DNA of 64,000 nt from Anthoceros angustus (taxonomy: Eukaryota; Plantae; Anthocerotophyta): assembly GCA_010909165.1 (NCBI GenBank), contig MU008173.1, forward strand, positions 1 to 64,000, given 5' to 3'. Positions 15,341 to 64,000 of the stretch are shown piece by piece. The translations under genes and the position numbers were made by a program. Every line of letters begins with the position of its first letter. Position 1 is the stretch's first letter. The notes under the pieces are model-generated. The model was not told the DNA's origin and ran no database searches. It saw nothing but the letters and a program-made list of their open reading frames with translations.

Positions 15341-15699
15341 CGCGGCCGCAGTCTGGCGGAAGATCGAGATTCATCGGGATTCGATCGCGATCGTAACAAG
15401 TTGAACAAGTTGCGTGCGGCTCCGCCTACCTTCCACCTCCCTCCACCGGCGTCACCCCGACTGGAAACACCCCGAGCGGCTGCTCAGGTGGAGCCGGAGG
15501 GAGCTCGCCACACCGAGCGAGCTCGAGCCTGCGCTGGAGTGTGCACTGTGCAGTTCCTGTGGGCGCAGACTGCAGTGCGAGTGGCACTGTTCATGGGCAG
15601 CGCCACCAGGAATACAAGTGGTGGGTGATCTGGAAAGGCACGACAAAGGAGGAGATGCTACGGGACAAGGCCAGGGAAGGTACCTACTACCACGACAAA

Positions 15700-16620
15700 A
15701 GGCCAGGGCAGTCGGGGCAGCGGGCTGCGGCCTGCGGCCTGCGGCCTGCAGGCAGGTCAAACATTCTCCCTTGCCTGCCTTGCCTGTGCTCGAGCTCTCG
15801 GCCTCTCTCTCCCTTCCTTGCCTTCTCTTTCCTTCGTCCTTCCCGGGCTTCCATCGTTTCTCTTTCCTCTCCGGCCTCTCTATCCTTTCCGTTGTTGGGC
15901 TCCCTTGCCTTGCCGTTCTTTTCCTTTCTGGCCTCCCGTTCTCTGCGCTTGTTGGCCTCCTTGCCTCGGCTTGCCCTCTCGCCTTGCCATCCCTTTCCTT
16001 TCTGGCCTGCCCCTGCCTCTGCCTCTGTCCTCTGCCCTCTGCCCTCTCCCCTCTGCCTCTGCCTCTGCCTCCCGTCCCCTCCAGTTATTATTATTCCAGG
16101 AATACAGTTGTGGGCTGTGGCGGCAGGGCGGAGCAGCAGGAGGTGGAGCCCGCCCCGAATGCCAGAGGCAGGGAGGCAGCGGCACAAGCGCGCACAGAGC
16201 CTGATGAGGTGAGTGGCGATGGTGCGAGGACGCGGCGTGGGCGCAGGTTGCCTGGCCTGCCGCGATTCCATTGCTCCCGCTCCCAGCTCGGCGCGCGCCA
16301 CGTCGGGGACGCCCGACGCCCGACGCCCGACGCCCGGGATAAGGCGACGCCTCGCAGCCAGAAGCCCGGGCGTAGCCTGACAGGCACCACTCCGCACCAT
16401 GTGGCGTCCCTCGGGGCCCGCACCCAGCCCCAGCCCCAGCCCCAGCCGTTTCGCGAAGTCCCAGCTCCGGCCTCGCCATCCCACTGTACTTGCGTCACCC
16501 CGGCCTCGGCCCTCGGGCTCCTGCAAACACCACACCTCATCATCGCCCGCCTTCATTCCTCGCGAAGGCCGCAAGCCGCAAACCGAAAGCCGCAAGCCGC
16601 AACCAGCTGCCCGCTACCGT
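15700..16620. repeat. GC-rich simple-repeat/low-complexity tract
   Basis: Runs of GCCTGCG, CCTCTG, CCCAGC, GACGCCC and CCGCAAG. These explain the long spurious ORFs on both strands. Confidence 0.6.
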
Positions 16621-17384
16621 CTTTTAATAGCCAAACCCTTTCACCTTCCCCCTCCCGTCTCTTCCCCGCTCAAGCACGCGCCGCTCTGGAACATCCAATA
16701 TCATAACCCGCTGCTCCTTGCACTATCATATATACTTTCCTTTGTTTTATACCATACATTTGTGGTGCTCAGTCGATATGGCCCTCTCCGGAGGGGCAAC
16801 AACCTGCCACCATCTTTCGTCACAAGCACAAACGCATGTGTGTGTACACCTCAAGGTACTTTTACTACTATTCTATGGGCACTTTATGCCTGCCCCTTCT
16901 TCCCCCCTGCCCCTTCCTTTCCCCAAGCATTTATTGCTCAGAATAGGACAAGTACAATACTCTGATAGCCGGAAACATCGCCTCATGTCTGGTGGTCTTA
17001 TTGTACCATTGTTTATGAGTAAAAAGTACATGTGCAATGACCCAGTCTCCCTCCTTGCTGTAAAACACTGTGCTTAGATTACATTAAAAAGGTCGGCGCA
17101 CCCTTAACTTGGATTATGAAACTCTACCCATCTATTAATAGTCCCTATACCATCACCGCCAGTACTCTACAAGTACAACAGACCAAGATTCTTGGAACCC
17201 TCTTGGAAGAATATTGTAAAGTAGTGTGGCATGTGTCAGCCACTTACGTTTCCATGTACCTAACACTTTCAACTTTAGGGTACTGTTCTAATATGAATCC
17301 TAAGGTGTGGGACAAGGACAAATTTATTTCTCTTCGTTCCGTTCCTTTGTGTTTTAGATCGAGATGCGGATGCATTTTTCTCCG

Positions 17385-17612
17385 AGTTTATTATTCATGC
17401 ATAGTGTGGAGCAATATATTTCTCATCCAAAGTGTTTATCGGTTCCAGCTACTGCACACCACTTCCAGCTGCTCCATAACACAAAGTATGTGCACGTGCA
17501 TCATTCGAGTTCATTATTCATGCATAGTATGGAACAATATATTTCTCATCACCAGCCTTACCAATTTCAGCTGCTGCACAGTACAAAGGATGTGCACGTG
17601 CATTATTCAAGA
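17385..17612 (+). repeat. Two-copy tandem duplication, about 120 bp
   Basis: TTATTCATGCATAGT(G/A)TGGA(G/A)CAATATATTTCTCATC...TGTGCACGTGCAT occurs twice. Confidence 0.7.
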
Positions 17613-19038
17613 GGATTGCCTGACTGCTGACTATATGTGTATTTAGGATTTGTTTGTTGATTGCTGATTGAATCTTCCCGGGTAGGAGAATTTCTGTTTC
17701 CCGCGTTCCATTACTTAGATTCGTTTGTAGATTGTCTATTGAATGTTCCATGGTAGGAGAATTTCCATCTCCTCTAGTTCATTCGAGAGGAATGACAGAC
17801 TTGGGACGTGGTAGGTACGAGGATTTTGTCTTTTGATTGAATGCTGTCGAGGATTTTGTCTTTTGATTGAATGTTGTCTAGCGGGAGAACGGAGAACTTA
17901 TTGGTTTCCCGAAAGTAACCAACCAAACCAATCTCATAGCTGATTCGTGACTGCACATGTATACTTAAGATTTGTCCTTCGATCGGATGATTCCTAGCAG
18001 TTCATCTCTAATTATGAAACCCAAAATTTTGAATAAAATTGATGAAGGTTGAAGACTCCGTAAGATATTTTTTTCAACGCCTGAAATTTATATACATTGA
18101 AAATAATAATGGTTGGACAAGGGTGTGAATTAAGGAGAGTACTTTTTGGGGAGCGGAGTTAAACACAACACAGCGCAGCAGAGGAAGGAGGGAGGGAGGG
18201 AGGAGAGGATGAATGAATGGAGGAGCAGAAAAAGAGGGGATAGCCATGAAAAGAGTAGAATAATATAGAAAAAGGCGCACCGATGGGGCCGCAAATGGCG
18301 GCTTTATGGGGCGCCAAGTTTGCAGCCACGCAAAAGGAGGCATATATTAGCTTGGGCCAGGCCCTTGATTTGCTCAAAGACACATGGGACCACCAAAGTG
18401 GAGCCTGGGCCGGCGGGTTGGGTCGGGTCTCGGGCTGGAGTTGGAGGCGGGCATGGGCTGGGGCTTGGGCTGGGGCTGGGGCTCGGGCTGGGGCTGGAGC
18501 ACGGGCAGCAGCAGCAGCGGGGCATACTGAAGGCGTCGGTCGGGCTCGGGCTCAGATCTGGTCCAGACTGCACTGCAATGCGGCCTGCTCCTCTCCCTGC
18601 CGCTGCAATGCGACCACAAATTGGCGGCGTCACCAGGAGCAGCAGAAGCAGCAACGGCGGCGGGCATGGAAGATAGGCAGCAGCAGCAGCAGCAGCTTCG
18701 CGGGGCCGGATCGTGGCAGCAATTGGGCGTCGCCCATTCCCGCGGCTCCGCGCGCCCCCTCCCTCTCGCATGAGCTGAGATGCGGCAGCGCCAGCACTGG
18801 CAGCCTTGGAAGCAGCAGCAGCAGCAGCAGGGAAGCGGGGCGAGTGGAGCGAGTGGAGCTACAGCAGAAGGAGGAGGAGGTAAAGGAACAGGGGCGGGAG
18901 TAGGAGTAGGAGCAGGAGCAGCACCGGGAGCTACAGGAAGCTGGGCGAGGCTGCAAGTGGGCCAGGTGGCAGGCAGCTGCAGCGCTGGCTCCGCTCCCCT
19001 GGGCAGTGAGCAATGTGAGGCAGCAGCGGGTGCGAGCC

Positions 19039-20175
19039 ATGTCGGATTCTGGGGACGAGGAGGCGCTGCGGCTGACGCTGTCGCCGCCGGGTTCCAGCTC
19101 CCGGCGCTGGGGCGCCTCCTCCTCGGGCTCCTCCACCGCCGCTGCCAGCTACACCGATGAGTCCCCGCAGGCAAATTCCCGCTCCCCACCTGCCGCTTCG
19201 CATTTGCAGCCAAGCTTGCATCCCGGCGTGCTGGAATTCGTCCCGTTCTGGGTCGCCCGTAGTGTCGGCGATGGGCGACGGGGCTGCGAGATTCACGTGA
19301 TTTTGGACGCGACTACGTGAATTGCGAGGGACATGTGGGACGGTGAGGCTGGGATTGTGTTCGTGTGTCCGTGTCTGATTGTTGTGGGCCCTGTGTGTGT
19401 GCGTGTGTGTGTTTGGCGGAGCAGGAGGGGAGAGGGAGTCGATCTTCCAGGAGGTCACAGACGTCGGCGGAGCAGTCTTCTGGGCCCAAGGATGACGAGA
19501 TTGATCCGCCCTTCGACTGGGCCACCAGTCGGCGGGCGGTGGTGCACTCGCTGGACGTCCTGGCGGGGGCCGGGATTCAGAGAATTGAAGGAGAGGTGAT
19601 GTGCAAGCGCTGCGACGGCCTCCAGATGGTGCCCGTCGATCTCGAGGTTGGTTAAGCTGCAAACTTCGAAGCCTGCGCAAGCCTGCCAGTGTCCTGTCCA
19701 ACTACTGTCTGCTGGCCTGCCGGTCTGTGAATGCAGCTGCAATACCTGCCACCTTGCAAGCTTCAAGCAGCCTTGCAGCTGCTTGTGGAAGCCTGGGACT
19801 GATCCACGCGCTTGCCTGGGGTGCTTGGGCTTGGATTGTCTGTAGGGCAATTTTGTTCAGATCAGCAGATATTTCCTGGCCAACAAGGGTTCCATGCACG
19901 ACAGGGCTCCCAAGATCTGGATGGTGCCGCGCCTGCTGGATTGCTCCATGTGCCACCAGACAGACTGCGTCAAGCCTGTCATCGATGGCCGCAAGCGCCA
20001 CATCAACTGGCTCTTCCTGCTTCTCACCCAGACCCTGGGCCTCTGCACTCTGGACCAGCTCAAGTATTTCTGCAAGCATAACCGCAGACACCGCACTGGG
20101 GCCAAGGACCGTGTCCTCTACCTCACATACGCTGGGCTTCTCAAGCAACTCAATCCCTCGGGACCCTATGACTGA
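19039..20175 (+). CDS. Plant-specific Cys-rich DUF7086-type protein, paralogue 1 (exons 19039-19170, 19425-19646, 19846-20175)
   Basis: LRLTLSPP N-terminal motif; IDPPFDWATSRRAVVHSL...EGEVMCKRC; MHDRAPKIWMVPRLLDCSMC...INWLFLLLTQTLGLCTLDQLKYFCKHNRRHRTGAKDRVLYLTY. All exons are phase 0; intron 1 uses a GC donor. Confidence 0.88.
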
Positions 20176-42770: not shown

Positions 42771-44443
42771 ATGGCGGCGAAGCTTGTGAGCTCTTGGCAC
42801 CAGCTTGCCAGTAAGGCCCAGGACGCCCACCCTCCGATCTCGTTGCCTTCCTTGTCGTGGAGTACTGGTCACGATGTCACCAAACGTAACTTGCTACGGC
42901 CCGTCTTGGGTCCGGGGAAAGCTCTTCCTACCCGGCTTCGGACGAAATGCGAGTTGTTGGCAACATCCGTCAAGCAGAGGTGAAGAATTCTCGCAAAATG
43001 GATGTGGCAATGGAATTAAGGGGGAACGTAATCGATGCTTGTAGCGGAGTCTTATATTGTTTGTGTTGTGGTTGCAGGGAAGTGGAACCCACCTTGAAGT
43101 CTTCTGCTGGGCAGAACCTTATGACTGACAGAGGTCAACTACAGAGGACAGCCAGTGTGACTAGTGCACCAGCGAAGTTTCAAATTCCCAGAGAACAGCT
43201 GGAGGTTATCGAGTCACTGGATGGCTGGGCTCAGACTTCGCTTTTGCCTCTGCTGAAGCCCGTAGACAAGTGTTGGCAGCCGCAAGATTACCTTCCCGAT
43301 GCATCGTCCGAGAGCTTCTACGAGGATGTGAGAGCGCTGCAGCAAAGGGCACGGGAGCTCCCCGATGACTATCTGGTGTGCCTGGTGGGAGATATGATCA
43401 CAGAGGAGGCTCTGCCAACATACCAGTCTGTTTTCAACACTTTCGAAGGAGTGAGAGACACCACAGGTAGCAGTCCAACACCATGGGGAGTGTGGGTCAG
43501 GGCATGGACAGCAGAGGAGAATCGCCATGGAGATCTGTTGAACAAGTATCTGTATCTTTCTGGCAGGGTGGACATGAAGATGGTAGAGAGAACGACTCAG
43601 CATTTGATTGGCTCGGGCATGGTATGATGACTTATTCTCCCACACCAGCTTCAGAGTAAATTTTTTGTCGGTTAGCATCTTGTTGCCTGCCTTCTGACCA
43701 CGAACTCCGCTTCCTTTCTGCACAGTGACTGGAGCAGCGCAGTGCTGTCTAACTATCGACTGTCACGTCTGCTTGTACTGCAGGATCCCGGAATCGACAA
43801 CAGTCCCTACAATGGCTTCATCTACACTTCTTTCCAGGAGCGTGCTACATTTATTTCCCATGGTAACACTGCCAAGCATGCCAAGAAATTTGGAGAGAGC
43901 AAGCTTGCTACCATCTGCGGGATGATTGCTTCTGACGAGAAAAGACACGAGATCGCCTACACCCGGATCATGGAGCAGCTGTTCAATCTAGACCCTAGTG
44001 GTGCTATGATTGCATTCGAGGAGATGATGAGGAAGAGGATCACGATGCCGGCTCACTTGATGTTTGATGGGGAAAATCGCCACCTGTTTCAAGACTACGC
44101 TTCAGTAAGAAGACCCCTTTCGCATCAGTTCCTTGCTTGTTTGTGTGTTCAACAAGTCTTCATTGTGCGTCTTATACCTTGACCTCTGCTTTCGCAGGTT
44201 GCTCAGCGATGTGGAGTTTATACGAGCAGAGATTATGCCCAAATTATCGAGCACTTGATTCAAGCCTGGAAAGTGGAAGAACGAGTGGGACTCTCCAGCG
44301 AGGCACAGCGGGCTCAGGATTACGTGTGTAATCTTCCCAGACGCATCCTAAGGTTGGAAGAACGAGCTGAGAGCCGATCGCAAAACAGACCTGCCAAAAC
44401 GGCTGCCTTTAGCTGGATTTTCAACAAGGAAGTTGCGTTGTAA
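42771..44443 (+). CDS. SAD: Plastid stearoyl-ACP delta-9 desaturase (exons 42771-42979, 43078-43621, 43784-44104, 44198-44443)
   Basis: Transit-peptide-like exon 1; [86 protein letters not shown] (both di-iron ExxH motifs), [11 protein letters not shown]. Confidence 0.97.
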
Positions 44444-50500: not shown

Positions 50501-51832
50501 GCTTTGTGGGTAAGAAACATGCATGCCTCACTATCTGCCAACGTCACCAACTGGGTTGAACAAACTCGACTTCATGTTCTTGGATGTCGGATCCTTGTTT
50601 GGTTTGTGCAGGTGTGCAAGCAGTTGCAAATATCGTTTTAGAGGATGCAATTGTGCAAAGGGTCACTGCAGTACGAGGAATTGTCCTTGTTTTGCTGCTT
50701 CACGGGAGTGTGATCCTGATGTATGCAGGAAATGCTGGATAAGGTGAGCATGTTGGAGTGCTTGGCAGACACGTCTGTGTGGTGCAACTTAGGTTGGAGC
50801 TTCCTGCATGTCAGCGAGGTTGTAGTGTATAAAGTTTGATCATGGTAATGATTTGCTTCTCTCAGCTGTGGCGATGGCTCTTGTATTGGACCACCTCAAC
50901 GAGAAGACATCTGTGACTGCCACAATATGTCCCTCTTCCTCGGACAAAAACAACGGGTACTCTAGGCATGCAGATGACACTCTGAGTTATTGCTACCGAG
51001 TCTGGGAGAGGCAGGAAAATGGAGGAGGCAGGCTGGCTTATTAATCTATGCTATTTCTCTGTCATGCAGGTTCTGCTAGGAAGATCAAGCATCGTTGGGT
51101 GGGGAGCTTTTCTGAAGGTTGGTGCTGAATGGAGGGTCAGATATTTCATTACTATGCATTATGTGGTGTTGATTCAACACTCTGAATCCTTACTGTGCAG
51201 AACCCTGTGGAAAAGAACACATTTCTTGGAGAGTATACAGGTGAGCTGATCACCCACGATGAAGCAGAACGAAGGGGAAGGAAGTATGATCATGAAGGCC
51301 GCTCGTACCTCTTCAACCTGAACAACGAGGCAAGAACCTGACACCCTTTGTGGTCTTGCTGTACACGTGGCACAGTGGAGGGAGAATTCTAACAGCTCAC
51401 TACTCCTAACCTCTCCAGTTCTGCATCGATGCTTATCGGAAAGGGGACAAACTCAAGTTTGCAAATCATTCCAGCCACCCGAACTGTTTTGCTAAGGTAA
51501 CTATTCCCGACAACCCGAGGGAGCCTTGCAACTTAATTTCATTCGTGCGTGGAACTGGGACCTTACGCTTGTTCTCTGCTTCACAGATCGTACTGGTGAG
51601 TGGAGACCACCGCGTAGGGATTTTTGCGAAAGAGCGGATCACTGCAGGTGAAGAGCTGTTTTACGACTACGACTATGCTCCGGAATCTTGTCCTGATTGG
51701 GCCGTGAAAGTGAACGAGGAGGAGCTTCGACAGTCACGCCAAAATCGTGCCAACTCCAAGTTCGCACGAAAAGCCCAACATCCTCGCAAACTGAAGAAGC
51801 CAGCCAAGAGGCTGTCTCTGTCGGATCCTTAG
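47570..51832 (+). CDS. E(z): Enhancer-of-zeste (CLF/SWN-type) PRC2 histone H3K27 methyltransferase, divergent paralogue; start codon approximate
   Basis: [12 protein letters not shown]; [23 protein letters not shown]; [27 protein letters not shown]; CXC (PCAC..CGKECPC...[19 protein letters not shown]...[21 protein letters not shown]); SET ([14 protein letters not shown]...GEYTGELI...YLFNLN...[17 protein letters not shown]...[22 protein letters not shown]). One GC-AG intron at 51330. Confidence 0.93.
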
Positions 51833-53123: not shown

Positions 53124-54995
53124 ATGGCGGCCGGCTGGAAGGGGAAGTTGAGCAAATGGGCGAGGGCGTCGGCGTCGGCGAGCAGCAGCGAGAGCGGGGA
53201 GGCGAAAATCGTGGTGGGCTTGGATTTCGGGACCACATTCTCGGGCTTCGCGTTCGCGCACAGGGACGAGCCGGACAAGGTGTTCTGCCACTACGAGTGG
53301 CCGGGGCAGGACACGAGCTACTGCAAGACGCAGACGAGCCTGTACTACGAGCGGGAGGGGCCCGGGCCCGGGGCCGAGTACAGGGCCACGCACTGGGGCT
53401 GGGCGGCGCAGCAGGCGCACTTGAAGGAGCTCAAGAGTCAGGGCAGGCGGGTCGGGCCCGGGGAGCAGAGCGCCGGCCTCTTCCTCTTCAAATTCAAGCT
53501 CAATTTGGCGCCGGAGGGGTGGAGGACGGAGCGGCAAGGGCAGGACGCGGCGCAGCTGGATGCGCTGGCCAGGCTACCGGCGGGGATCACCACCGAGGAC
53601 AGCATCACCGAATACCTGGGGAAGCTCTCGGGCTTCGTGATCGAGCATCTCAAGGACAAGTACGGGCCGCACATCACGTCCCGGGACGTGCAGTGGTGTC
53701 TCACGGTGCCCGCGATATGGGAGGATTCGGCCAAGCAGACGATGCGCAGATGCGCCCAGATGGCGGGCATGGCCACCGGGCCTTTCTGCCCGGCGCAGAA
53801 GGCGGGGAGCGCCAGCCCGTTCCCGCTGGTGAGCGTGCTGGAGTCGGAGGCGGCGTCCGTGTACTGCGCGCGCAGATCCAACCAGTTCGCTCTCGGGAAG
53901 GGGGACCAGTTCCTGGTGGCGGACGTGGGGGGCGGGACCACCGACATCGTGGTGCACACCAAGCAGAACGACAGCTCGTCCGATCTCCGGCTGCGGGAGA
54001 CGTTGCAGAGCTCGGGGGACCTCTGCGGGGGCACGCACGTGGACCAGGGGTTTCTGAGATTTCTCAGCCGCAGGATTCCGTGCTTCCCGGATGAGGTGCA
54101 CAGGGTGCCCGCTACTCTCACCAAGGTGCTGAAACGGTGGCTGGAGATAAAGGTGTCGTTCGATGGCGAGGACCAGTGGGGGCCGGAGGAGTTGGACATC
54201 CCTCCCAATCTGTCCAGGGCCTGGAAGAAGTACGATGCCAGGATGGGATACCGCTCTGAAAACCACGACGAGATGGAGATCAGGGCGAGCGATATGCGGG
54301 CCATCTTCGATCCTGTGGTGGATAGGATCATTGCGTTGATCGGGGAGCGGCTGACTCTGGAGGTGAAGATGATGCTGCTGGTGGGTGGCTTCTCTTCCTC
54401 GCCGTATCTCAAGCTGAGACTGAAGGCTGCCTTTGCCGGGCAGCTGGGTGATCGGATAGTGACCCCGCCGGATCCCGGCAGCGCTGTGTGCCAAGGGGCC
54501 GTCTTATTCGGCTTCGCGCCGGAGGTGGTCATCTCCAGGGTTAGCCGCAAAACGTACGGGATCCAGCAGATGCGCAGGTTCAAGCCTGGGGATCCCCCTG
54601 CTTACGAGACCATGTTGCGGGGGAGGGCCTACTGCAGCAACACCTTCACGCCCTATGTGCGGAAAGGTGAGGAAGTCCCCATTGAGCACTGCGTCAAGTG
54701 CAAAGGGAGCCCTTCTGTGCTTGGCCTCGACACCCTCAACATCAACATTTACAGCTCGGATGAGCAACAGGTGCGCTACACCACCGACGATGGAGTGAAG
54801 CTGGAGGCTACCTTCAGCATGGACATATCTGACGATCCTAAGAAACTGGATCTGGACAGGGTAGTGGAGCTGTCCATGTACTTCGGATTGTCGTGCATTC
54901 AGGTTCGGGCGCGGCGCCTCAATTTCGGTAATCGGAATGAGGTGGTTGAGATGCACGATGTCATCGGCTTGACACTCGAGACAGCCGACGTTTGA
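53124..54995 (+). CDS. Atypical Hsp70 (HSPA12-like actin-fold ATPase) copy 1, intronless, 623 aa
   Basis: VVGLDFGTTFSGFAF (phosphate 1), WCLTVPAIW, LESEAAS, DVGGGTTD (phosphate 2), CGGTHVD, LLVGGFSSSPYL (adenosine), AVCQGAVLFG, SRVSRKTYG. No canonical DVLLLD linker, helical lid or EEVD. Confidence 0.88.
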   Translation: MAAGWKGKLSKWARASASASSSESGEAKIVVGLDFGTTFSGFAFAHRDEPDKVFCHYEWPGQDTSYCKTQTSLYYEREGPGPGAEYRATHWGWAAQQAHLKELKSQGRRVGPGEQSAGLFLFKFKLNLAPEGWRTERQGQDAAQLDALARLPAGITTEDSITEYLGKLSGFVIEHLKDKYGPHITSRDVQWCLTVPAIWEDSAKQTMRRCAQMAGMATGPFCPAQKAGSASPFPLVSVLESEAASVYCARRSNQFALGKGDQFLVADVGGGTTDIVVHTKQNDSSSDLRLRETLQSSGDLCGGTHVDQGFLRFLSRRIPCFPDEVHRVPATLTKVLKRWLEIKVSFDGEDQWGPEELDIPPNLSRAWKKYDARMGYRSENHDEMEIRASDMRAIFDPVVDRIIALIGERLTLEVKMMLLVGGFSSSPYLKLRLKAAFAGQLGDRIVTPPDPGSAVCQGAVLFGFAPEVVISRVSRKTYGIQQMRRFKPGDPPAYETMLRGRAYCSNTFTPYVRKGEEVPIEHCVKCKGSPSVLGLDTLNINIYSSDEQQVRYTTDDGVKLEATFSMDISDDPKKLDLDRVVELSMYFGLSCIQVRARRLNFGNRNEVVEMHDVIGLTLETADV

Positions 54996-55293
54996 GGGCT
55001 GGCTTGCTCTCGGTTCCACGATTTTGAAGCCCTTCCCTGGCCCCGCAGTCCTGATCAGATTGGGCGGCTGCATTCACGACATCTGCGGATAGATATCTGT
55101 TTCGTTCCAAGGTGTACGAAGCCCTACAGATTGTCTCGGTAGCCTGATGAAGAAAAGGAAGAGCATTTGAAGGCCAGAGGAGGTAAGCCGTCCAGGTCTC
55201 CACAAGTCAGACCTGCGTGTAAAGATGCAGCTTCTGGATACCTCCTACAGCTGTGTGTGAGCAATCCACAACTCTCGAAAAAGCGCCCGACCA

Positions 55294-57566
55294 TTAAGTT
55301 GACTGCTTCCCACTACCATCTTCAGGAGCAGGAGCTAAGCACCTTGAGGAGGGAGAAATTTGAGAGTACACTTCACTTTTTATGATGACTTTCCCTACAC
55401 GGAAGCCCGGAACAACCATGAATGCCACTTTGGGAAGGAAAGGTTGTTCATCTTCATCCACAATGTTAGCCATGTACAGAGGATCCAAGTCTGCTCCACT
55501 ATCCACTCCAAAGATCCTTGCACTGGGCAGAAAGGAGAGAGCCAACCTTTGCAACAGCCACACCGCCGTTGCAAGAGCCACGAACCTTCTGTAGTAGGGG
55601 TGGTTAGTTTGTTGACATGTCGGTACAAGCTGTTCAGGAGTGATGCTTAGAAACTTGCTACGAGCAAATTGTACCATCTTACTGCTGGAGTTGGCCGGGT
55701 TCAGGTCCACCACCGTTTTGTGGGACTTGAGCTGCTGGAATTCCTCGAAGAAGGCTCCGTGAGGCTTGTCCAGATCCCAAGGTCCTTGCTCGCAAAACCC
55801 ATCAATCTCGAAGCCTTGGAACATGGCAGTAGATATGACATAGGCCGCAAGGTACTTGTGGTGGGTAGACCTTGCAAATCTCGTCCTGCTGATCACTCCG
55901 GAATCTCCATAGGGCAAACCCGCTTTCTCCATCACCGTGCCATACTCCTTGGCAAACAGCAGCAGCTTGTCTTTCACTATCCTCACATGATCATCCAGCA
56001 GCACAGGTGTTGCTTCACCGTCAGTGTATGCTCCGGAGCTCGACGTTCTTGCGTTACTCTGTTCCCACAGCCTCGTCAGCTTCTGCACCTGCTGCTGCCC
56101 AGCCCTTACCTCCTCCTTCAGCTTTTCTTTCTCCAGCTCGTTCTTGCTCCTCAACGTCTCCTGGTAGGTTGCCCGCTGCATATACGGCTTCGGTGATTCG
56201 GTCCTGGTTGGAGACCCGTACTGATCGTAGCGAGTGATATCATCCACAGATAACCCTCTCCGATCGAGGGAGTCCCAAGTTCTCATATCATCCGGCGTTC
56301 GCCATCTGTGATCGACAGACTGCACTAGGGCGCCGCTACCTTGAAGCTCTTGCTGCATCTCGGTCACACTGGCGTTGGAGTGACGATTCTGCTGTGCTCG
56401 CTTCATCTCCGGTAGAGCCAGCAGTATCTCCAGTTGCCTGTGATACTCCACAGCCTCCGAAACAAACGCTGAAATGTGGTTGCTCCAGTTCTTCAGATGA
56501 GAAAGAACATCAGCTGTCCCTTCCCTCTGCCTGGGGTGGTACCCGCGAGCGTCATCCAACGAGTCTGTTCGTCGATGGCCGTGGCTTTGCTGAATCTGGG
56601 CAACTCGGTTCTGAGGATGGGCAGACGCCGGGGCAAGTGGTCCCCTGGAAGAATCTCCCAACCGCTCCCGTTCTGCAATCATGCCATCAGCTGTCCTGGC
56701 AGGTAGCTCCACCAGACCTCTACATTTGAGCTCTTGCCTTGCCTGGAAGGCCAACTCTAGCATCTTTTTGCATCCAGCTTCAACATTGTCCAGCGCAGAT
56801 AGATACTGATTGGGTACTTGGCCCAGCACCCTCGGGGCTGTATTCTCGTACCCTTTTCTATCTGTAATCCGGGCCGATGTGAGTGGAGCCAACTGCTGCA
56901 GCAAAGATGTTAAAGGTTGGGTCGGAATGACTTGGACTGAGGTAGAGGAAGTGTAATCCCCAGCTCTTGATGACTGGAGAATCGACTATTGTTCAAAACA
57001 GAAAGCACAGGTCAGTCAGCATTCCACAAAATTCGTCTTCTTCCGTAACTTTGTACAGCATTGCCAGAGCTTGATCCGCCTTGCAAGTCTAGGACAGTAC
57101 CTCGTTACCTTCGGCGCCATCTAGCATCTTTTTGCATCCAGCGTCAACATTGTCCAGCGAAGATAGATACTGATTGGGTACTTGGCCCAGCCTCGGGGCT
57201 GTATTCTCGTACCCTTTTCCATCTATCCGGGCCGATGTGAGTGGAGCCGACTGCTGCAGGAAAGCAGTTAAAGGTTGGGTCGGAATAACTTGAGCTGAGG
57301 TAGAGGAAGTGTAAGCCCCAGCTCCTGATGACTGGAGAATCGACTATTGTCCAAAAGGGAAAGCACATGTACAGGTCAGTCAGCTGCATGCCACAAAATT
57401 CTCCTTCATCCGTTGCTTTGTACAGCATTGCCAGAGCTTGATCCGCCTTCCAATTTCAGGACAGTACCTCGTTATCGCTGGTGCCATAGCCAAACGCCTC
57501 TTGTCCCTGCTTCTTCGAATTTTTCTGCTTCACGGTGCCGAACACCGTCTTCCACGTCCACGCCAT
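55294..57566 (-). CDS. GIL1/IRKI-family coiled-coil protein with GrpE-like C-terminal head, about 677 aa (exons 57566-57468, 57343-57101, 56985-55294)
   Basis: Spliced ORF starting MAWTWKTVFG; central coiled coil (ELEKEKLKEEVRAGQQQVQKL); KYLAAYVISTAMFQGF, FFEEFQQLK, FARSKFLSI, YYRRFVALATAVWLLQRLALSFLPSARIFGVDSGADLDPLYMANIV...KVAFMVVPGFRVGKVIIKSEVY, matching the GIL1/IRKI C-terminal consensus. Both introns (124 and 115 nt) are GT-AG with a CTGAC branch motif and are phase 0. Confidence 0.8.
56757..57487. repeat. About 365-bp tandem duplication (intron plus exon) inside the GIL1/IRKI-like gene
   Basis: CTAGCATCTTTTTGCATCCAGC...GATAGATACTGATTGGGTACTTGGCCCAGC...GACAGTACCTCGTTA begins at 56757 and again at 57121. 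Confidence 0.9.
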
Positions 57567-57885
57567 ACCTCCTCTGCAGATGGTTCCAGCAAGCCGTGAA
57601 GTAAGATTGGAGGTAGTGGTGGAGGCAAGTCTCCCGCATGAACCGCGTGCGGCGGGTGGAGGCAAGTTGCGAGCAAGAGCGCATTGCCTGCCTGCCTTAT
57701 CCTGGGAGCGTGCACCTTGCTCTAGGACTTTGACATGGTCTTCAATTGTTTATGAAGAGAGCCAGCCTACCCCGCATGTGCCGTGGCAGAGCGTAGTTGG
57801 CGTGCATTACAAACCTGCCAGTTTGCGGGATCGCGGGCAAGGGAAGGGAAGGGTCGGCAGGGCAGAGCTGTCCTTTGCTGTTGCA
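57567..57885. promoter_or_regulatory. Putative 319-bp bidirectional promoter between the GIL1/IRKI-like gene and Hsp70-like copy 2
   Basis: Divergent ATGs at 57566 (-) and 57886 (+). No canonical nGAAnnTTCnnGAAn heat-shock element seen. Confidence 0.5.
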
Positions 57886-59697
57886 ATGTCGACGTCGGAC
57901 TCGGCCGGGGTGGAGGTCCGGGTGGTGATCGGGGTGGATTTCGGGACCACATTCTCGGGCTTCGCCTATGGTCACAGAGACGAGCCGGAGAAGGTATTCA
58001 CCTTCTACGAGTGGCCGGGGCAGCTGGGCAAATCCTACTGCAAAACGCCCACCAGCATCTTCTACTTCAACAACGGCACGGCGGACGCGCCGGAGTACGA
58101 GGCCACGCTCTGGGGATGGCCCGCGCCGCTGCACAACTTGAAGGAGAAGGAGATGAACCTGGCGCACGGCGCGCTGGTGACCCAGTTCAAGCTCCTCCTG
58201 GCCCCGGGGCCCGGCAAGCTCGGGAGGCTGCTCTCCAGATCCAGGGGATCCGGCTCCGGATCCAGGCGTGGCGGGAGGAATGAGGAGCCGGAGACGGCGG
58301 ACATCCTCCCGGGGGTCACGGCTGTGCGGGCCATCACAGACTACCTGGGCAGCATCTGCAGATTTGCGCTGGCGCACGTCCAGGCGATCTACGGGGAGGC
58401 CAACGTCACGGCGCAGCAGGTGCAGTGGTGCCTCACAGTGCCGGCAATCTGGGACGATGCGGCCAAGCAGGTGATGAGGAACTGCGCGCAGCGGGCCGGG
58501 ATCGTGACGGGCCCGCTCTGCCCCGCCCGGGAAGGGGGCAAGGCCAGCCCGCATCCCTTGCTCATCGTGCTCGAGTCCGAGGCCGCGTCGGTCTACTGCG
58601 CCACGAAGCGGCAGCTGCTGCTGGTGAGGGGAGATGAATTCTTGGTGGCGGATGTGGGAGGGGGGACGGTGGACATCGTGGTGCACACCAAGGACAGCGA
58701 GGAGGGGGAAGACCTGGTGCTGCGGGAGATGCGGCAGAGCAGCGGGGACTTGTGCGGGGGGACGTTTGTGGACACGAATTTCCTCAGGTTCGTGAGCGGC
58801 AGGATCCCTTGCTTCGATGATGTGGTGGCCACCAGTCCGGGTGTGAAGACGGTGATGTTGCGGAGGTGGGAGGAGGTGAAGGCGGTGTACGGAGGGGACG
58901 AGGATCTGGAGCCGCAGGGCCTGGAGATCCCGGCCAAGCTGCGGAGGGAGATGAGGAGGCGGAATCCGGGAGGGGAGTGCGACGAGCTGGAGATCTCGAG
59001 GGAGGACATGGCTGGGATCTTCGACCCCGTGATCGACCAGTGCATCGGGCTGATCCGGCAGCAGCTCACGGCGCGCACCAGGGTGCTGCTGCTGGTCGGA
59101 GGGTTCTCGGCGTCTCCGTATCTGAGGAACAAAGTGCGGGCAGCCTTCCAGGAGGAGCTGGGAGGGAGCATCGTCATGCCGCCTGATCCCGGCAGCGCCG
59201 TGTGCCAGGGCGCTGTCCTCTTCGGATTCTTCCCCCGGACTGTGGTTTCTAGGGTTTCCCGCAAGACTTACGGCATCCAGGAGCTGCTGCCGTTCGAGCC
59301 TGGTGATCCTGAGGATGCCGCTGTGAGCACGGCGGGAGGAAAGAGATGCGGTACTCGCTTCACCCCTTTCGCGCGGAAAGGGGAGCCCATCGGGATTCAT
59401 CAGTGCGTCCAGCACAGCCTGTACCCTCAGTTTAAAGGACAGAACAGCTTAGCTGTGCGGATTTACAGCTCCAGTGCCGCGCAAGTGCGCTACACCACTG
59501 ATCCTGGTGTGGAGATGGAAGGGGAATTCATCATCGATATCGCTGACGATGCGGAGGGCCTAGGCTTGGCTCGCCATATCGTAGTGTCCATGTTTTTTGG
59601 GCTGTCCTGCGTTGAAGTGAAGGCGCGGCGCATCAATTTCGGCGACCGGTCTGAGATCATCCCACTTCACGACACCATCGGGTTCGAGCACTCCTGA
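57886..59697 (+). CDS. Atypical Hsp70 (HSPA12-like) copy 2, intronless, 603 aa
   Basis: VVIGVDFGTTFSGFAY, WCLTVPAIW, LESEAAS, DVGGGTVD, CGGTFVD, LLVGGFSASPYL, AVCQGAVLFG, SRVSRKTYG. The ATG at 57886 is preferred over the GTG-started extension in the ORF track. Confidence 0.88.
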   Translation: MSTSDSAGVEVRVVIGVDFGTTFSGFAYGHRDEPEKVFTFYEWPGQLGKSYCKTPTSIFYFNNGTADAPEYEATLWGWPAPLHNLKEKEMNLAHGALVTQFKLLLAPGPGKLGRLLSRSRGSGSGSRRGGRNEEPETADILPGVTAVRAITDYLGSICRFALAHVQAIYGEANVTAQQVQWCLTVPAIWDDAAKQVMRNCAQRAGIVTGPLCPAREGGKASPHPLLIVLESEAASVYCATKRQLLLVRGDEFLVADVGGGTVDIVVHTKDSEEGEDLVLREMRQSSGDLCGGTFVDTNFLRFVSGRIPCFDDVVATSPGVKTVMLRRWEEVKAVYGGDEDLEPQGLEIPAKLRREMRRRNPGGECDELEISREDMAGIFDPVIDQCIGLIRQQLTARTRVLLLVGGFSASPYLRNKVRAAFQEELGGSIVMPPDPGSAVCQGAVLFGFFPRTVVSRVSRKTYGIQELLPFEPGDPEDAAVSTAGGKRCGTRFTPFARKGEPIGIHQCVQHSLYPQFKGQNSLAVRIYSSSAAQVRYTTDPGVEMEGEFIIDIADDAEGLGLARHIVVSMFFGLSCVEVKARRINFGDRSEIIPLHDTIGFEHS

Positions 59698-60220
59698 TGA
59701 CCCTCCCTTGGCCCAATCACACCCAACGTCTGGCTTCCATGTGTTTCGCAATTCGCATCACCATGCGGAAAACCTTCCTGTCCGGAACACTCTTTCTTAG
59801 TACTAGTAACAACTGGATGCGTGCATAGTGGAGAGGGGACTGATGACAGATGAGGAGGAGAGAGCACTGGTGAGCGGGCGTGCACCCCTGCCCGTTCTCT
59901 ATCTGTCATCTTCCTTCTGCAGGATTTGATGCGCAAGGATAGCGCAGGACAAACGGGCTCTGTGACTCTCTACAATGCATACAGATTGGGAAGCGACTTC
60001 GTTCCACGCGCGTCATTTCTCAGGACCTGCACGCTTGCTTCCTTCCTTCCTTGTACCGGCGTCAGACGAGAAAAGTTGCACATGCATCAATCAGATTAAA
60101 ATTTACTGTATGTACAGTATTAGGAAGGAGTATTAGGAAGGAGATGCCAGCGCGTGGGGCCACTGTGGGCTTGGAACTCAAGCCTCACGGACTACCATTT
60201 GACCATCCTGGTGCGCCAAA

Positions 60221-60366
60221 GGGCCATAGGGATTCAAAGATGTTTGGGTGAATTGAAGAGGCCTCGGACGAGCTTTGGCCCTCCGCTCGGACGAGCTTTG
60301 ACCGGAGGGCCATAGGGATTCAAAGATGCTTGGGTGAATTGAAGCGGCCTCGGACGAGCTTTGACC
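60221..60366 (+). repeat. About 86-bp tandem duplication
   Basis: GGGCCATAGGGATTCAAAGATG(T/C)TTGGGTGAATTGAAG(A/C)GGCCTCGGACGAGCTTTG at 60221 and 60307. Confidence 0.8.
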
Positions 60367-60409
60367 GGTGTCTATTTGCTTCACCGAAAGAGATCAAGCG
60401 ACTTCATCA

Positions 60410-61950
60410 AAGAAGATGAGAGTTTGTACCTTGACTCCGGTGCATCCCAGCATTTCAGTTATAACCTACCTTAGTTCTCAAGCTATGAGGTATTGCTAGA
60501 GGGGCATACAGTGGCACTTGGTGACAATAGGTCACATGACATGACATCAAGGGAAGAGGAGTGTTCCGAGTCCATTTTCCAGGAGAACAGTCTACAGGTA
60601 TTAAGGACGTGCATCATGTGCCTCATCTTGCGAGGAATCTTCTTTCTGTCGCAAAAATCGCCAATGCAGATCATGAGGTTGTGTTCAATTCCAAAAGAGT
60701 TCGGATCCAATCCGAGGAGCCTGAGTTATCGAATGCTAAAGTGGTTGCTAGGGGCGTCCGAATAGAAAATTTGTATAAGTTGTGTGCTTCCGTGGGAAGG
60801 CAAACTTGCACCTTTATGGACAGTTCGCAAAATAGCATTGGATCTATTGATTTATGGCATCAACGTCTGGGGCACATTGGTGTCAACAATATCAGGTTGA
60901 TGAAGAATCAACATATGGTCACAGGCTTGGATTTGAAAGAAGTGGGTGAGCCACAATTATGCCAAGGGTGCATAATGGAAAAGCTAAAGCGAACCAAGTT
61001 CCCAAAGATTGCAGCGCGACGAGCAAAGATGGTGATAGAGTTGGTACACACGGATGTGTGTGGTGCAATGAAAAATCCCACTCATGGCGGAGCCCGCTAC
61101 ATTCTGGTGTTCGTGGATGATTTCACCAGGAAGACCTGGACATATCTTATGAAGGAGAAATCCCAGGTATTTACACTCTTCAAGGAATGGAAAGCCATGG
61201 TGGAGAATGCAAGTGGACAACGTATGAAGACTTTGCGTAGTGACAACGGAGGTGAATACATCTCCGCTGACTTCCAACGCTTTTGCAAGGAGCATGGAAT
61301 TGGGAGGCAACTAACCATCCCTCACACACCGGAGCAAAATGGAGTGGCGGAGCGCAAACTTAAGAGTCTGGTGGAGGTAGCTAAATGCATGTTACATCAT
61401 AGTGGCTTGGAAGTACGTTTTTGGGGTGAGGCTGTTGTTACAACAACCTATGTTTTGAATCGAGTTCCAACCAAAGCTATTGTTGGAATGACCCCGGAGG
61501 AAGCGTGGTCTGGCGTCAAGCCCGACATAAGCCATTTGAGAATCTTTAGTTCAGTGGTTTATGCTCACGTTCCGAAGCAAACCCAAACAAAATGGGATCC
61601 AAAAGGCATGAAGTGCCTAATGCTTGGATACTCTACTGAGATTAAGGGCTACCGGTTGTCTAATCTTTCAAGGAAGAAGATCATGTTTAGCAGGGACGTA
61701 CGTTGTATTTAATGAGGTTGTGGAACCCATTAAAGGAGTGGGAGCTCCAATCCCAATGGTTATCATGAAGGATCCGACGACGTATGTTGACAACCCTGAT
61801 GAGGATTCTGAGTATGATGACACTCTTGAGCAACCTGCTCCTGAGCCCAACGAACCTTCTCAACAACGCGATATAGAGGGGGGAGAAAGGGAAATTCCCG
61901 ATGTCGTGGTTCGAGAAGTAGATGAAGATCAAAGCATTGTCGTAGTTGCT
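60410..61950 (+). mobile_element. Ty1/Copia internal fragment (protease, GAG-pre-integrase, integrase); RT/RNase H and LTRs not seen
   Basis: YLDSGASQH; VPHLARNLLSV; LWHQRLGH; CQGC; ELVHTDVCG; VFVDDFTRKTW; LRSDNGGEY; PEQNGVAERK; SRDV. Frameshifts at both ends. Confidence 0.9.
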
Positions 61951-63009
61951 CCCTCCCCGTGCCTGCACCCTCGCTCCCCGTCCCCGCGCCCTCCCTTCCC
62001 GTCTTCGCGCCCCCGCGCCCTCCCTGCCTTCCGCTTGACGAAGGCAGATCGCTCCTGCCTTCCGGAAGTCTTTAATTTGAAACACCCCGCGCTCAGTTCA
62101 TACTCTCGCGCACAGTTCTAAAATCAAGCATGGTTGGGTTGTGCCGTGCTGAGCAAAATACGGCAGTGACATCCTATACCATGATGAGAGAGAATCGTGG
62201 TGGGCGAGGCATGGCAGATTTTACACGCGCGAAGCATTGATTGCTTCGGAGATTCAGGCACATTTGCGGTACTTGGCTGCCCCCAAGGACGTATGTTGCG
62301 AATCCCACGCTTGTGCGCCTTATGGGATGCCCGACCCTACATCACCGCCCTATTCTGAAATGGCCTAAAAGCTAGGGTTGTTCAGCTTGTGCAGTCGAAG
62401 TATTTTAGGGCCCTCACCCAACCGAAGAATAGGACACGAAACACTCCCCGAACCGATGAAGCCGAGCTATGTACACCCCCTTGTAAGTCTACGCGCTCAA
62501 CAGAAGGTCATGCTCACTTGCTCACGTCATTTCCTTGCACACCACCGAAACATCCATCACTGATCCAACACTTGAAGCCACAAGCTCAGCTCCCCACGCT
62601 CTGCATCAACCCGGACGCGAAGTGCGTGCAGAAGGACTCTCCAAGCTACTCTGCTCTCCAAGCAACACAGCCACTTCAGTCACCTTCGGGCCAGCTTACA
62701 GAGAGCACGCGGTAGGGGGAGCAAGACATTTGCAAAGCACGAGATTGACGGATGTGGTCTTGAGTGTAGCGCGTACTGCAGACAGAGGTATTGCAACTCG
62801 GGGTTTCCGATTGTCGGCTTCGGGTAGTAGTGTGTCATGTGACTCCTGTGGTGGCGTATCACAAAAGCTTGGCAGCAAAGGACGCCACGTTAAACCAGTT
62901 CATGGTGTGGTGCATTCATCAAATCATAAGTTCTCGGTGAATGCTGAACATCTCCACAACCGCAAACATCCAGGGCGTTGATCTCCTACCAGGTGGTCTT
63001 CGCTGCGGC

Positions 63010-63262
63010 CACTAGGTTGAGGATTTGCACACCTATCTTTTGACCATGATCTTCCGAAGCCGAAAGCCTGGAACAACCATGAACCCAACTTTGAGCGGGG
63101 CCATGTCAGACTCCTCCTCCTCACCGTTATCCGCAATCCTTGCCATGTACCGCTCGTCAACACGGCACTAGGATCTTTGCTCTACGGGGAAAGGAGAGAG
63201 CCAACCTCTGCAATTGCCACAGAGCAATAGCTAGAAGCACAAACCTCCTCAAGGCCTCATGA
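63010..63262 (-). pseudogene. Decayed C-terminal fragment of a second GIL1/IRKI-GrpE-like gene
   Basis: HHEALRRFVLLAIALWQLQRLALSFPRRAKI-(frameshift)-DERYMARIADNGEEEESDMAPLKVGFMVVPGFRLRKIMVKR*V. Aligns with 55340-55580. Confidence 0.8.
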
Positions 63263-63266
63263 TGAG

Positions 63267-64000
63267 TCACAATTCGAGGGTGGAGGCCATTTCGACCGTC
63301 TCGTCAGTGTCACCGAAGTTGAGTCGTCGAGTCTGAACGCGGATGCACGACCTGCCGAAGAACATGGACGTGGTCCATTTGCGCGCCATACCTAGCATCT
63401 CGGGATCCTGCGAGATGTCCATTCTGTACTCGCCTTCCAGAACCACGCCGGGCTCGGTGACGTAGCGCACCATCAAGGCGTCTGTGCTGAAGATGCGAAA
63501 TCTTACACCGGTCTGGTCTGCACGACCGGGCCATCCGGGAAGCGAGAAGCATTCATCCACGCCAACGTGCTGTCCCTTGCGCACGAAGATGCTGAACCTG
63601 TGCATGCATCGCCAACCCAAGGAATCACCCCATGCCCGATGGCTGGAAGGATCCAGTTCCTCATCGAAGGCACGCATCACCTCCAGGCCGTAGGTTTTGC
63701 GGGACACTCTGGAGGTGACCAGGTCGGGGGAGAAACCGAAGAGGACAGCTCCTTGGCACACGGCGCTACCGGGATCTGGCGGCATCACGATCGCTTTGTC
63801 TCCTAGCCTGCCTGCCAATGCTGCCTTCACTCTGTCCCGCAGGTAAGGAGAGGCAGAGAAACCGCCTACCAGCAGCAGCTGCTTCAGGCGCGGGGTTATG
63901 GCCTCCCGAATGAGCTCTATGATCCTGTCCACCACAGGGTCGAAGATTTGCTTCATATCCGACACTGTGAGCTCGATCTCAGCGAAGTTCAGGTCCACGT
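63267..64000 (-). CDS. Atypical Hsp70 (HSPA12-like) copy 3, 3' part only (runs off the window)
   Basis: IFDPVVDRIIELI, LLLVGGFSASPYL, PPDPGSAVCQGAVLFG, SRVSRKTYG, SMFFGRSCIRVQTRRLNFGD...LEL*. Clear paralogue of copies 1 and 2. Confidence 0.86.
   Translation of the reverse strand, partial: VDLNFAEIELTVSDMKQIFDPVVDRIIELIREAITPRLKQLLLVGGFSASPYLRDRVKAALAGRLGDKAIVMPPDPGSAVCQGAVLFGFSPDLVTSRVSRKTYGLEVMRAFDEELDPSSHRAWGDSLGWRCMHRFSIFVRKGQHVGVDECFSLPGWPGRADQTGVRFRIFSTDALMVRYVTEPGVVLEGEYRMDISQDPEMLGMARKWTTSMFFGRSCIRVQTRRLNFGDTDETVEMASTLEL

Follow-up and report, generated by a model that had tools for sequence, protein, structure and literature searches.

The function of HSPA12-type Hsp70 proteins is unknown despite their massive expansions in some animals, including bivalves (2026 review, PMC13580251). 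The window analysed here, a stretch of 64,000 nucleotides of Anthoceros angustus (contig MU008173.1, positions 1 to 64,000), carries three Hsp70-like genes of this type, called H1 to H3, interleaved with a gene of the GIL1/IRKI family, called G. This raises the question whether G is a cofactor of H. Bacterial DnaK with GrpE and mitochondrial mortalin with GrpEL1 are Hsp70 proteins that work with a dimeric coiled-coil nucleotide-exchange factor, and we know of no partner gene described for the animal HSPA12A/B proteins. Our tentative answer is that a two-gene module of H and G is plausible and has partial support; it may represent the Hsp70 plus exchange-factor theme in a new form.

All positions given for the three Hsp70-fold open reading frames in the first-pass annotation hold. 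H1 (53124..54995, plus strand, 623 amino acids) and H2 (57886..59697, plus strand, 603 amino acids) are intact and intronless, and H3 (63267..64000, minus strand) is the C-terminal 243 amino acids of a third copy, truncated by the end of the window. H1 was assigned from its open reading frame, a weak Pfam HSP70 match, the family profile and AF2/Foldseek, and H2 and H3 from their open reading frames and their identity to H1 (50% and 52%, respectively). In a tree the three copies form one lineage-specific clade. The claim that the H genes lack introns agrees with a 1785 nt RNA contig colinear with H1, but this support is indirect, as the identity of 94% means that the source of the contig is an allele or a paralogue of H1. 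More generally, the RNA contigs over H1 and H2 come from copies of 92-94% identity, not demonstrably from the window loci.

The motifs GLDFGTTFSG, TVPAIW, ESEAAS, VGGGTTD and SRKTYG were read in the sequence, in line with the HSPA12-type signature proposed earlier. The label of the HSPA12 branch is indicated by source names alone, namely 'HSPA12A-like' in the annotations of Selaginella and Mortierellomycota (Entomortierella) homologues. In an alignment of 18 H homologues, the columns for phosphate-1 (DxGTT), phosphate-2 (DxGGGTxD) and the catalytic Lys and Glu are fully or at least 90% conserved, and from this conservation the proteins look active. The H family profile matches the nucleotide-binding domains of BiP and DnaK with an E-value of 4e-12.

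As modelled by AF2 (pLDDT 83.6), H1 can be superposed on BiP and DnaK in the ATP state over approximately 620 columns, through the beta domain (Foldseek, E 1e-22, TM 0.6). Past residue 469 the model consists of beta strands only, without C-terminal helices, i.e. without a helical lid. The C-termini of the H reading frames are ...ETADV, ...GFEHS and ...STLEL, and EEVD is absent, so the earlier statement on missing lid and EEVD stands, the former as predicted by AF2. H1 is in this model a nucleotide-binding domain followed by a beta substrate-binding-like domain. This lid-less architecture differs from that of DnaK and is that of animal HSPA12A/B, with which the H genes also share multiple copies, tandem arrangement and rapid diversification. 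Unlike HSPA12A/B, they are plant/streptophyte genes, intronless in the Anthoceros genome. H homologues are abundant in seed-free plants.

G lies on the minus strand and has three spliced exons coding for 677 amino acids with the N-terminus MAWTWK. Its expression and splicing were established from RNA contigs. Exon 1 (57468..57710) contains the ATG at 57566 and a 5' UTR extending to at least 57710, and an RNA contig covers 57468-57710 with zero mismatches. Exon 2 (57101..57343), defined by the RNA joints and by blastn of the repeat units, adds an 81-aa repeat; this exon arose by recent tandem duplication of the beginning of exon 3, to which it is 92% identical in DNA (blastn). Exon 3 (55294..56985), supported by Pfam, RNA contigs and AF2, ends in the stop codon and encodes the long helix and helical bundle of G together with its GIL1_IRKI_C beta domain (the GrpE-like module). 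Exact-match RNA contigs lie on this exon at 56077-56826 and 56798-56985. The RNA joints connect 56985 with 57101 and 57343 with 57468, with CT..AC on the plus strand corresponding to GT..AG on the minus strand, and both introns share the same ends, GTACTG..CAATAG.

The G reading frame at 55294-56904 (minus strand) matches GIL1_IRKI_C (PF24994) with an E-value of 3.9e-9 and 36.8 bits, where the gathering cut-off is 27. An exhaustive phmmer search gave 179 family members; word-indexed homologue searches with G, both as a single sequence and as a 60-sequence profile, gave no matches. The N-terminal coiled-coil model DUF641 (PF04859) has no Pfam match in G and is present in 25 of 60 aligned relatives. 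The AF2 model has pLDDT > 90 across residues 240-520 of the G reading frame, and Foldseek relates it to GIL1 (E 8e-13), IRKI (E 1e-11) and MIEAP (probability 1.0, E 8e-7 to 1e-4). In the ESM Atlas, MIEAP also turns up as a neighbour by both shape and feature. Thus, G has the C-terminal domain and overall fold of GIL1/IRKI/COST1 (the DUF641 family), from which it differs by giving no match to DUF641 and by the internal repeat. It shares its fold with MIEAP/SPATA18, the animal mitochondria-eating protein, which belongs to another kingdom, has other reported biology and showed no sequence similarity to G in the searches run.

H1 and G are tail-to-tail, 298 bp apart. G and H2 are head-to-head, and the divergent interval (57567..57885) measures 319 bp from ATG to ATG, given the RNA-supported start of G. 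Both spacings are exactly as first reported. Since the G transcript fills at least 144 bp of this interval, its 5' end is at most 175 bp from the ATG of H2. The second, decayed copy of G reported behind H3 is real. It is found at 63039..63267 on the minus strand, by tblastn, by reading the sequence and by hmmsearch with the G C-terminal profile (two pieces, E 6.5e-10 and 2e-5), covers partner residues 433-509, i.e. the beta-domain region only, and contains a frameshift and stops. The relic begins at the stop codon of H3 on the same strand, and its arrangement is therefore unlike both H1/G and G/H2. The first-pass annotation had counted the two families as co-occurring twice within 11 kb. As independent events this count does not stand, because H1-H3 are lineage-specific duplicates, and the double co-occurrence is probably one duplicated unit. 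A fragment of a copia integrase lies between H2 and H3.

A gene-neighbourhood survey, proposed in the first-pass annotation, was carried out on 11 loci from other species, where a pair was defined as both families within 10 kb. The outcome is divided: the pair was found in two very distant streptophytes, but the other nine of the 11 loci have no partner in this range. The nine are those of Physcomitrium, Ceratodon, Calypogeia and Selaginella, one ENA moss-like contig, two contigs from metagenomes, and two more G loci. At locus L008 of Klebsormidium nitens, the multi-exon H gene P0101 (plus strand, start 6265) has a G-family reading frame (4265-1653, minus strand) head-to-head with it, and this reading frame is recognised with an E-value of 8e-13 by a profile excluding both the frame itself and the window G. 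At locus L009 of Riccia fluitans, an intact G (P0124) is accompanied, in tail-to-tail orientation, by the decayed C-terminal half of an H (tblastn E 3e-52) and by a decayed second G; this H and the second G copy are pseudogenes. A metagenome scan with the H alignment gave two usable eukaryotic loci, 0/2 with G. The observed 2/11 is to be compared with a rough chance expectation of approximately 0.03, which supposes no more than 10-50 copies of each family and genomes of 100-400 Mb. Linkage in three lineages, i.e. in the window, a green alga and a liverwort, makes G a testable candidate cofactor of H.

Adjacency could also exist without functional coupling. G would then be an ordinary adaptor of the GIL1/IRKI/COST1 type inside a large recombining H array, with the Klebsormidium and Riccia pairs being coincidence or leftovers of old synteny. 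The lack of the pair at most surveyed loci fits this reading, as does the descent of H1-H3, by which the window contributes a single event. Furthermore, none of the best 120 H homologues comes from a seed plant, though G-family genes are present and functioning in seed plants, so the G family does not depend on H. Nevertheless, two pairs in 11 loci are far above the rough expectation, copy numbers being assumed, and both the head-to-head and the tail-to-tail geometry recur. Given the rapid turnover of the families, unselected synteny would hardly last past the split between Klebsormidium and embryophytes. We consider adjacency without coupling somewhat unlikely.

A number of other candidates were examined and rejected. 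No H-G fusion protein was found among the long homologues examined: the extra length of the H homologues P0001 and P0002 consists of low-complexity inserts rather than G, and the long G homologues have no Hsp70 domain. Neither the XS gene beside H in Ceratodon nor the XH gene beside H in Riccia has a counterpart in the window, and they were not taken as parts of the module. That the pair came from a virus or a mobile element was considered and set aside, as the Klebsormidium H is multi-exon and G has spliceosomal introns. A monophyletic clade of 'H-linked' G proteins was likewise rejected, since the G tree is unresolved, with Klebsormidium on a long branch and the window G grouping only with P0121.

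The GrpE likeness of the C-terminal module of G is indicated by three independent lines, each of them weak to moderate. Firstly, GrpE is the top VIA-align match of G and the only globular solved fold recovered. Secondly, Foldseek relates G to a GrpE-annotated AFDB cluster (E 1.4e-7), and GrpE clusters are among its ESM Atlas shape neighbours. Thirdly, hhalign aligns the beta domain of G with that of GrpE with a score of 29.3 (P 4e-4), against 15.7 as the highest score of 100 column shuffles, 10.1 for the reversed alignment and 16.2 for an unrelated family. The GrpE profile used for this consisted of 15 sequences from five phyla and replaced an enterobacterial-only profile, which was too shallow (probability 0.4%). 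The region matched in this profile-profile alignment is precisely the beta domain that is equivalent in structure.

The proposal of a GrpE-like partner is kept as a possible likeness in the fold of this module, but not in the sequence. Pfam GrpE (PF01025) does not match G at E-values up to 1, and hmmsearch with the G C-terminal profile found nothing among PDB sequences; membership of the GrpE family by sequence was therefore rejected. Weak Pfam GrpE matches in three of 60 G relatives (best E 0.028) are probably driven by the coiled coil, and the Foldseek PDB search with G was not significant. G also differs from GrpE in its long disordered N-terminus and its helical region, which is approximately three times larger.

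Members of the G family have been connected with NTPases. COST1 is a binding partner and stimulator of the GTPase RHD3, and its C-terminal domain was modelled beside the GTPase domain; the action is via dimerisation and promotion of hydrolysis, not exchange (PMC13189119). The known partner of the GIL1/IRKI/COST1 family is thus a dynamin-like GTPase, whereas G is linked to Hsp70-like genes. In P0174 an SMC_N ATPase head is fused to GIL1_IRKI_C, and a basidiomycete cluster with the same fold as G carries a G-domain.

These relatives bear on a second alternative, in which linkage and co-regulation of H and G are real, G is a scaffold, targeting adaptor or client rather than an exchange factor, and the resemblance to GrpE is a convergent succession of a long helix and a small beta domain. 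Like GIL1, IRKI, COST1 and MIEAP, G could then tether H to a membrane, a condensate or a receptor. The mode of action of COST1 and the divergent promoter geometry are compatible with this, and the fold matches are strong to GIL1, IRKI and MIEAP (E 8e-13 to 1e-4) and weak to GrpE. Against it, the profile-profile alignment sits on the equivalent beta domain with clean controls, and no globular solved fold other than GrpE was recovered. In our estimate this second alternative is unlikely.

Under the module reading, the window would be part of a large, quickly turning-over array of intronless HSPA12-type genes in a seed-free streptophyte, with G embedded in it. Each H would combine a catalytically equipped nucleotide-binding domain with a beta substrate-binding domain, the lid being absent. 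G would have a disordered N-terminus and then a long, probably dimerising helix, followed by a helical bundle and a small beta domain; the bundle would resemble the four-helix bundle of GrpE, and the beta domain its beta head. The module may have been inherited from early streptophytes, with H and G transcribed divergently out of a short common interval. A G dimer would dock on the nucleotide-binding domain of H and regulate its nucleotide cycle, by exchange or by other cofactor action, for which GrpE on DnaK and COST1 on RHD3 are precedents. The role of such a pair might lie in stress or in conflict.

As in DnaK-GrpE, the gene for an Hsp70-fold ATPase is here beside a gene whose product has a long helix, then a helical bundle and, at the C-terminus, a small beta domain; unlike in the bacterial operon, H and G are separate eukaryotic units, either divergent or convergent. 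A wider reading, which we regard as doubtful, is that GIL1/IRKI/COST1 in plants and MIEAP in animals are distantly related to GrpE, a kinship not recognised before, and use the beta head to regulate nucleotide-dependent switches, and that one early-streptophyte lineage became the dedicated, linked exchange factor or cofactor of lid-less HSPA12-type Hsp70s. A linked candidate cofactor makes the function of these Hsp70s experimentally approachable. If the module is real, these orphan chaperones gain their first known partner, and if the GrpE likeness holds, there is a structural rationale for the poorly understood proteins GIL1, IRKI, COST1 and MIEAP, all of which would regulate by setting a GrpE-like head on a nucleotide-binding domain.

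Birth-and-death turnover, suggested in the first-pass annotation, is borne out by the decayed copies in the window and in Riccia, and by the comparison of H1 with the expressed copy of 94% identity, an allele or paralogue, which gave 27 nonsynonymous and 9 synonymous changes from just 39 displayed differences. In this the locus is similar to head-to-head immune pairs such as plant NLR pairs: G and H2 are divergent with a short common interval, there is local duplication and decay, and no sign of purifying selection was seen. It differs in that immune domains such as NLR or TIR are absent. That the H copies and G are merely non-functional remnants of a dying array, as the frameshifted G relic, the copia fragment and the 27:9 ratio of H1 could suggest, is highly improbable in view of the long intact reading frames of H1, H2 and G, the conserved catalytic motifs of H, the transcription and correct splicing of G, and an expressed copy that differs from H1 in length by an in-frame 9-nt insertion only. 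A DNA contig of a related organism (run X3, approximately 90% identity) spans the H1-G junction, which adds to the evidence for linkage beyond the window.

Three GC-rich ORFs of the HSPA12-type Hsp70 family (H), namely H1 (53124-54995, +), H2 (57886-59697, +) and the partial H3 (63267 to the window end, -), all sit within the final 11 kb of the window. Between H1 and H2 a minus-strand ORF, here called G, encodes a GIL1_IRKI_C domain according to Pfam. The first-pass annotation had described these three ORFs and the interleaved GIL1/IRKI-type gene; we confirm that observation, and the spacings it quoted from G to H1 and to H2 are exact.

The three H copies share 50-52% identity. Single H sequences gave weak scores against Pfam HSP70, and with a profile of 18 family members BiP and DnaK were matched in their nucleotide-binding domains (E 4e-12). 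For H1, AF2 gave a model (pLDDT 83.6) that comprises a nucleotide-binding domain and a docked beta substrate-binding domain without the helical lid, and that superposes on ATP-state BiP / DnaK over ~620 columns (E 1e-22, TM 0.6). Across homologues, the columns for phosphate binding and catalysis are fully or almost fully conserved (>=90%). The function of HSPA12 was called unknown in a 2026 review (PMC13580251).

Homologues of H are plentiful in mosses, liverworts, lycophytes, ferns, Klebsormidium and Mesostigma; Mucoromycota have weaker ones, and none of the best 120 matches came from seed plants. In the tree, H1-H3 form a lineage-specific clade with nearest relatives from Logan assemblies, so that one duplicated unit is the simplest explanation for both co-occurrences of H and G in the window. 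The two families do co-occur twice in 11 kb, but the two occurrences are not independent evidence.

An exhaustive search gave 179 relatives of G. The closest, at 47% identity, and the closest relative of H1 are both from one Logan sample; the remaining ones, at ~30%, belong to the GIL1/IRKI/DUF641 proteins and stem from Welwitschia, Ceratopteris, Riccia and Selaginella, and the DUF641 model itself did not match G. The partner had been called GrpE-like, and this holds for the plausible fold of its tail but not for the sequence and PDB searches, as there was no match to Pfam GrpE, nothing was found by hmmsearch against PDB sequences, and Foldseek against PDB gave no significant match (best E 0.12), with GrpE chains recurring only at ranks 11-29 (E 0.7-1.6). 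In the AF2 model of the third-exon ORF (536 aa), with pLDDT >90 at ORF residues 240-520, a helix of 49 residues is seen along with a helical bundle and a small beta domain. In the AlphaFold libraries the closest folds were GIL1, IRKI and MIEAP, followed by a GrpE-annotated cluster (E 1.4e-7) and Swiss-Prot GrpEs (E ~0.01). GrpEL1 again ranked first in an independent VIA-align search of 48,161 representatives, where the other top rows were all trivial single-helix matches, and two GrpE clusters were among the rows of an ESM Atlas shape search. Additionally, the beta domain of G was compared with that of GrpE (146-186) by hhalign, using a GrpE alignment of 15 sequences (E. coli and ten plasmid-borne genes, five phyla). 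The score was 29.3 (P 4e-4), against a mean of 9.9 and a maximum of 15.7 for 100 column shuffles, 10.1 for the reversed alignment and 16.2 for the unrelated H family; the hhalign probability was just 18-34%. G and GrpE probably share a fold and are possibly distant homologues, membership of the GrpE family not being established.

To survey the linkage of H and G in other species, 11 independent loci (7 found via H and 4 via G) were taken with 10 kb on either side and searched with tblastn and a G profile. The pair was present at two, in Klebsormidium nitens and Riccia fluitans. In Klebsormidium a minus-strand G-family ORF (4265-1653; E 8e-13 with a profile built excluding that ORF and the window) and the multi-exon H gene P0101, with its start at 6265, are arranged head-to-head. 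In Riccia, less than 10 kb after the intact G gene P0124, a frameshifted C-terminal half of H (E 3e-52) lies tail-to-tail with a second, broken G, so both geometries of the window recur elsewhere. Furthermore, a DNA contig of a related organism bridges the H1-G junction at ~90% identity. No pair was found within the flanks of the other nine loci (Physcomitrium, Ceratodon, Calypogeia, Selaginella and five further contigs, some metagenomic). Chance would give ~0.03 positives among 11 loci, a rough estimate on assumed copy numbers (<=10-50 per family, genomes of 100-400 Mb) and not a test. An XS-domain gene adjoins H in the Ceratodon locus (L006, 5486-6689) and an XH-domain gene adjoins the H fragment in the Riccia locus (L009, 13258-14828), neither having a counterpart in the window; XS and XH each form one half of the IDN2/SGS3-type architecture.

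The proposal of an Hsp70 and GrpE-like module is partly supported, by linkage in two distant lineages and by the plausibly GrpE-like fold of the G tail, but most surveyed loci lack the pair. We tentatively prefer a functional module in which G would act as cofactor of the H nucleotide-binding domain, with putative interaction and exchange. No description of such a pair was found in our literature searches. That H and G are adjacent without any coupling agrees with the nine loci lacking the pair and sits against the two having it; we consider it rather unlikely.

The RNA evidence for G is from a run of the same sample as the best-matching DNA. Contigs match 56077-56826, 56798-56985 and 57162-57343|57468-57710 with zero mismatches and carry two minus-strand GT..AG joints, giving a spliced ORF of 677 aa with its ATG start at 57566. 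A recent tandem duplication spans 56628-57467 (-), in which exon 2 and its intron were both copied (92% DNA identity to the following segment), and both introns for this reason have the same ends, GTACTG..CAATAG. Both exon copies are spliced, adding an internal repeat of 81 aa to the protein. The transcript extends to at least 57710, leaving <=175 bp between the 5' end of G and the ATG of H2, which is compatible with a bidirectional promoter. Over H1 and H2 the RNA contigs align colinearly at just 92-94% identity, and were therefore assigned to alleles or paralogues and not to these copies.

Such spacing would also suit genes that are linked and co-regulated without G being an exchange factor, an explanation we hold to be unlikely, with the plausibly GrpE-like fold on the other side.

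COST1, a DUF641 protein, binds the dynamin-like GTPase RHD3 and raises its GTPase activity, and its C-terminal domain adjoins the GTPase domain in an AF3 model (PMC13189119). The G-family homologue P0174 (981 aa) has an SMC_N ATPase head fused to GIL1_IRKI_C, and a basidiomycete cluster in the ESM Atlas with the same GIL1_IRKI_C / MIEAP-like fold carries a GTPase G-domain. The latter two hint at a general association of the fold with NTPases, and all three are compatible with a general cofactor role on nucleotide-binding domains, Hsp70 being in none of them.

A dead locus is very improbable, given the intact ORF of H1 and the spliced transcript of G, even with decay nearby. The G relic (-), which has a frameshift and stops, shares the strand of H3 but not its frame, and its first position, 63267, is also the final base of the stop codon of H3. 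Neither H1/G nor G/H2 would give such a junction by simple duplication of their arrangement. Riccia likewise mixes intact and decayed copies. H1 was also compared with an expressed allele or paralogue of 94% identity (53312-54113). The 39 displayed differences, a partial list, fall evenly over codon positions (12/15/12), comprise 27 nonsynonymous and 9 synonymous codons and give no sign of purifying selection; they would point to relaxed or diversifying selection. The sole length difference is an in-frame insertion of 9 nt in the expressed copy behind 53542.

A Ty1/copia-type integrase fragment (rve, gag_pre-integrs, SH3-like domain; 60561-61712, +) lies between H2 and H3. The regions 3000-8000 and 15000-20000 are GC-rich (58-63% GC), and both strands there carry long overlapping ORFs with zero Pfam matches. 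Upstream of the cluster, an FA_desaturase_2 exon of a stearoyl-ACP-type fatty-acid desaturase (42947-43627, +; E 1e-68) and a SET-domain exon (51545-51832, +) belong to ordinary plant genes.
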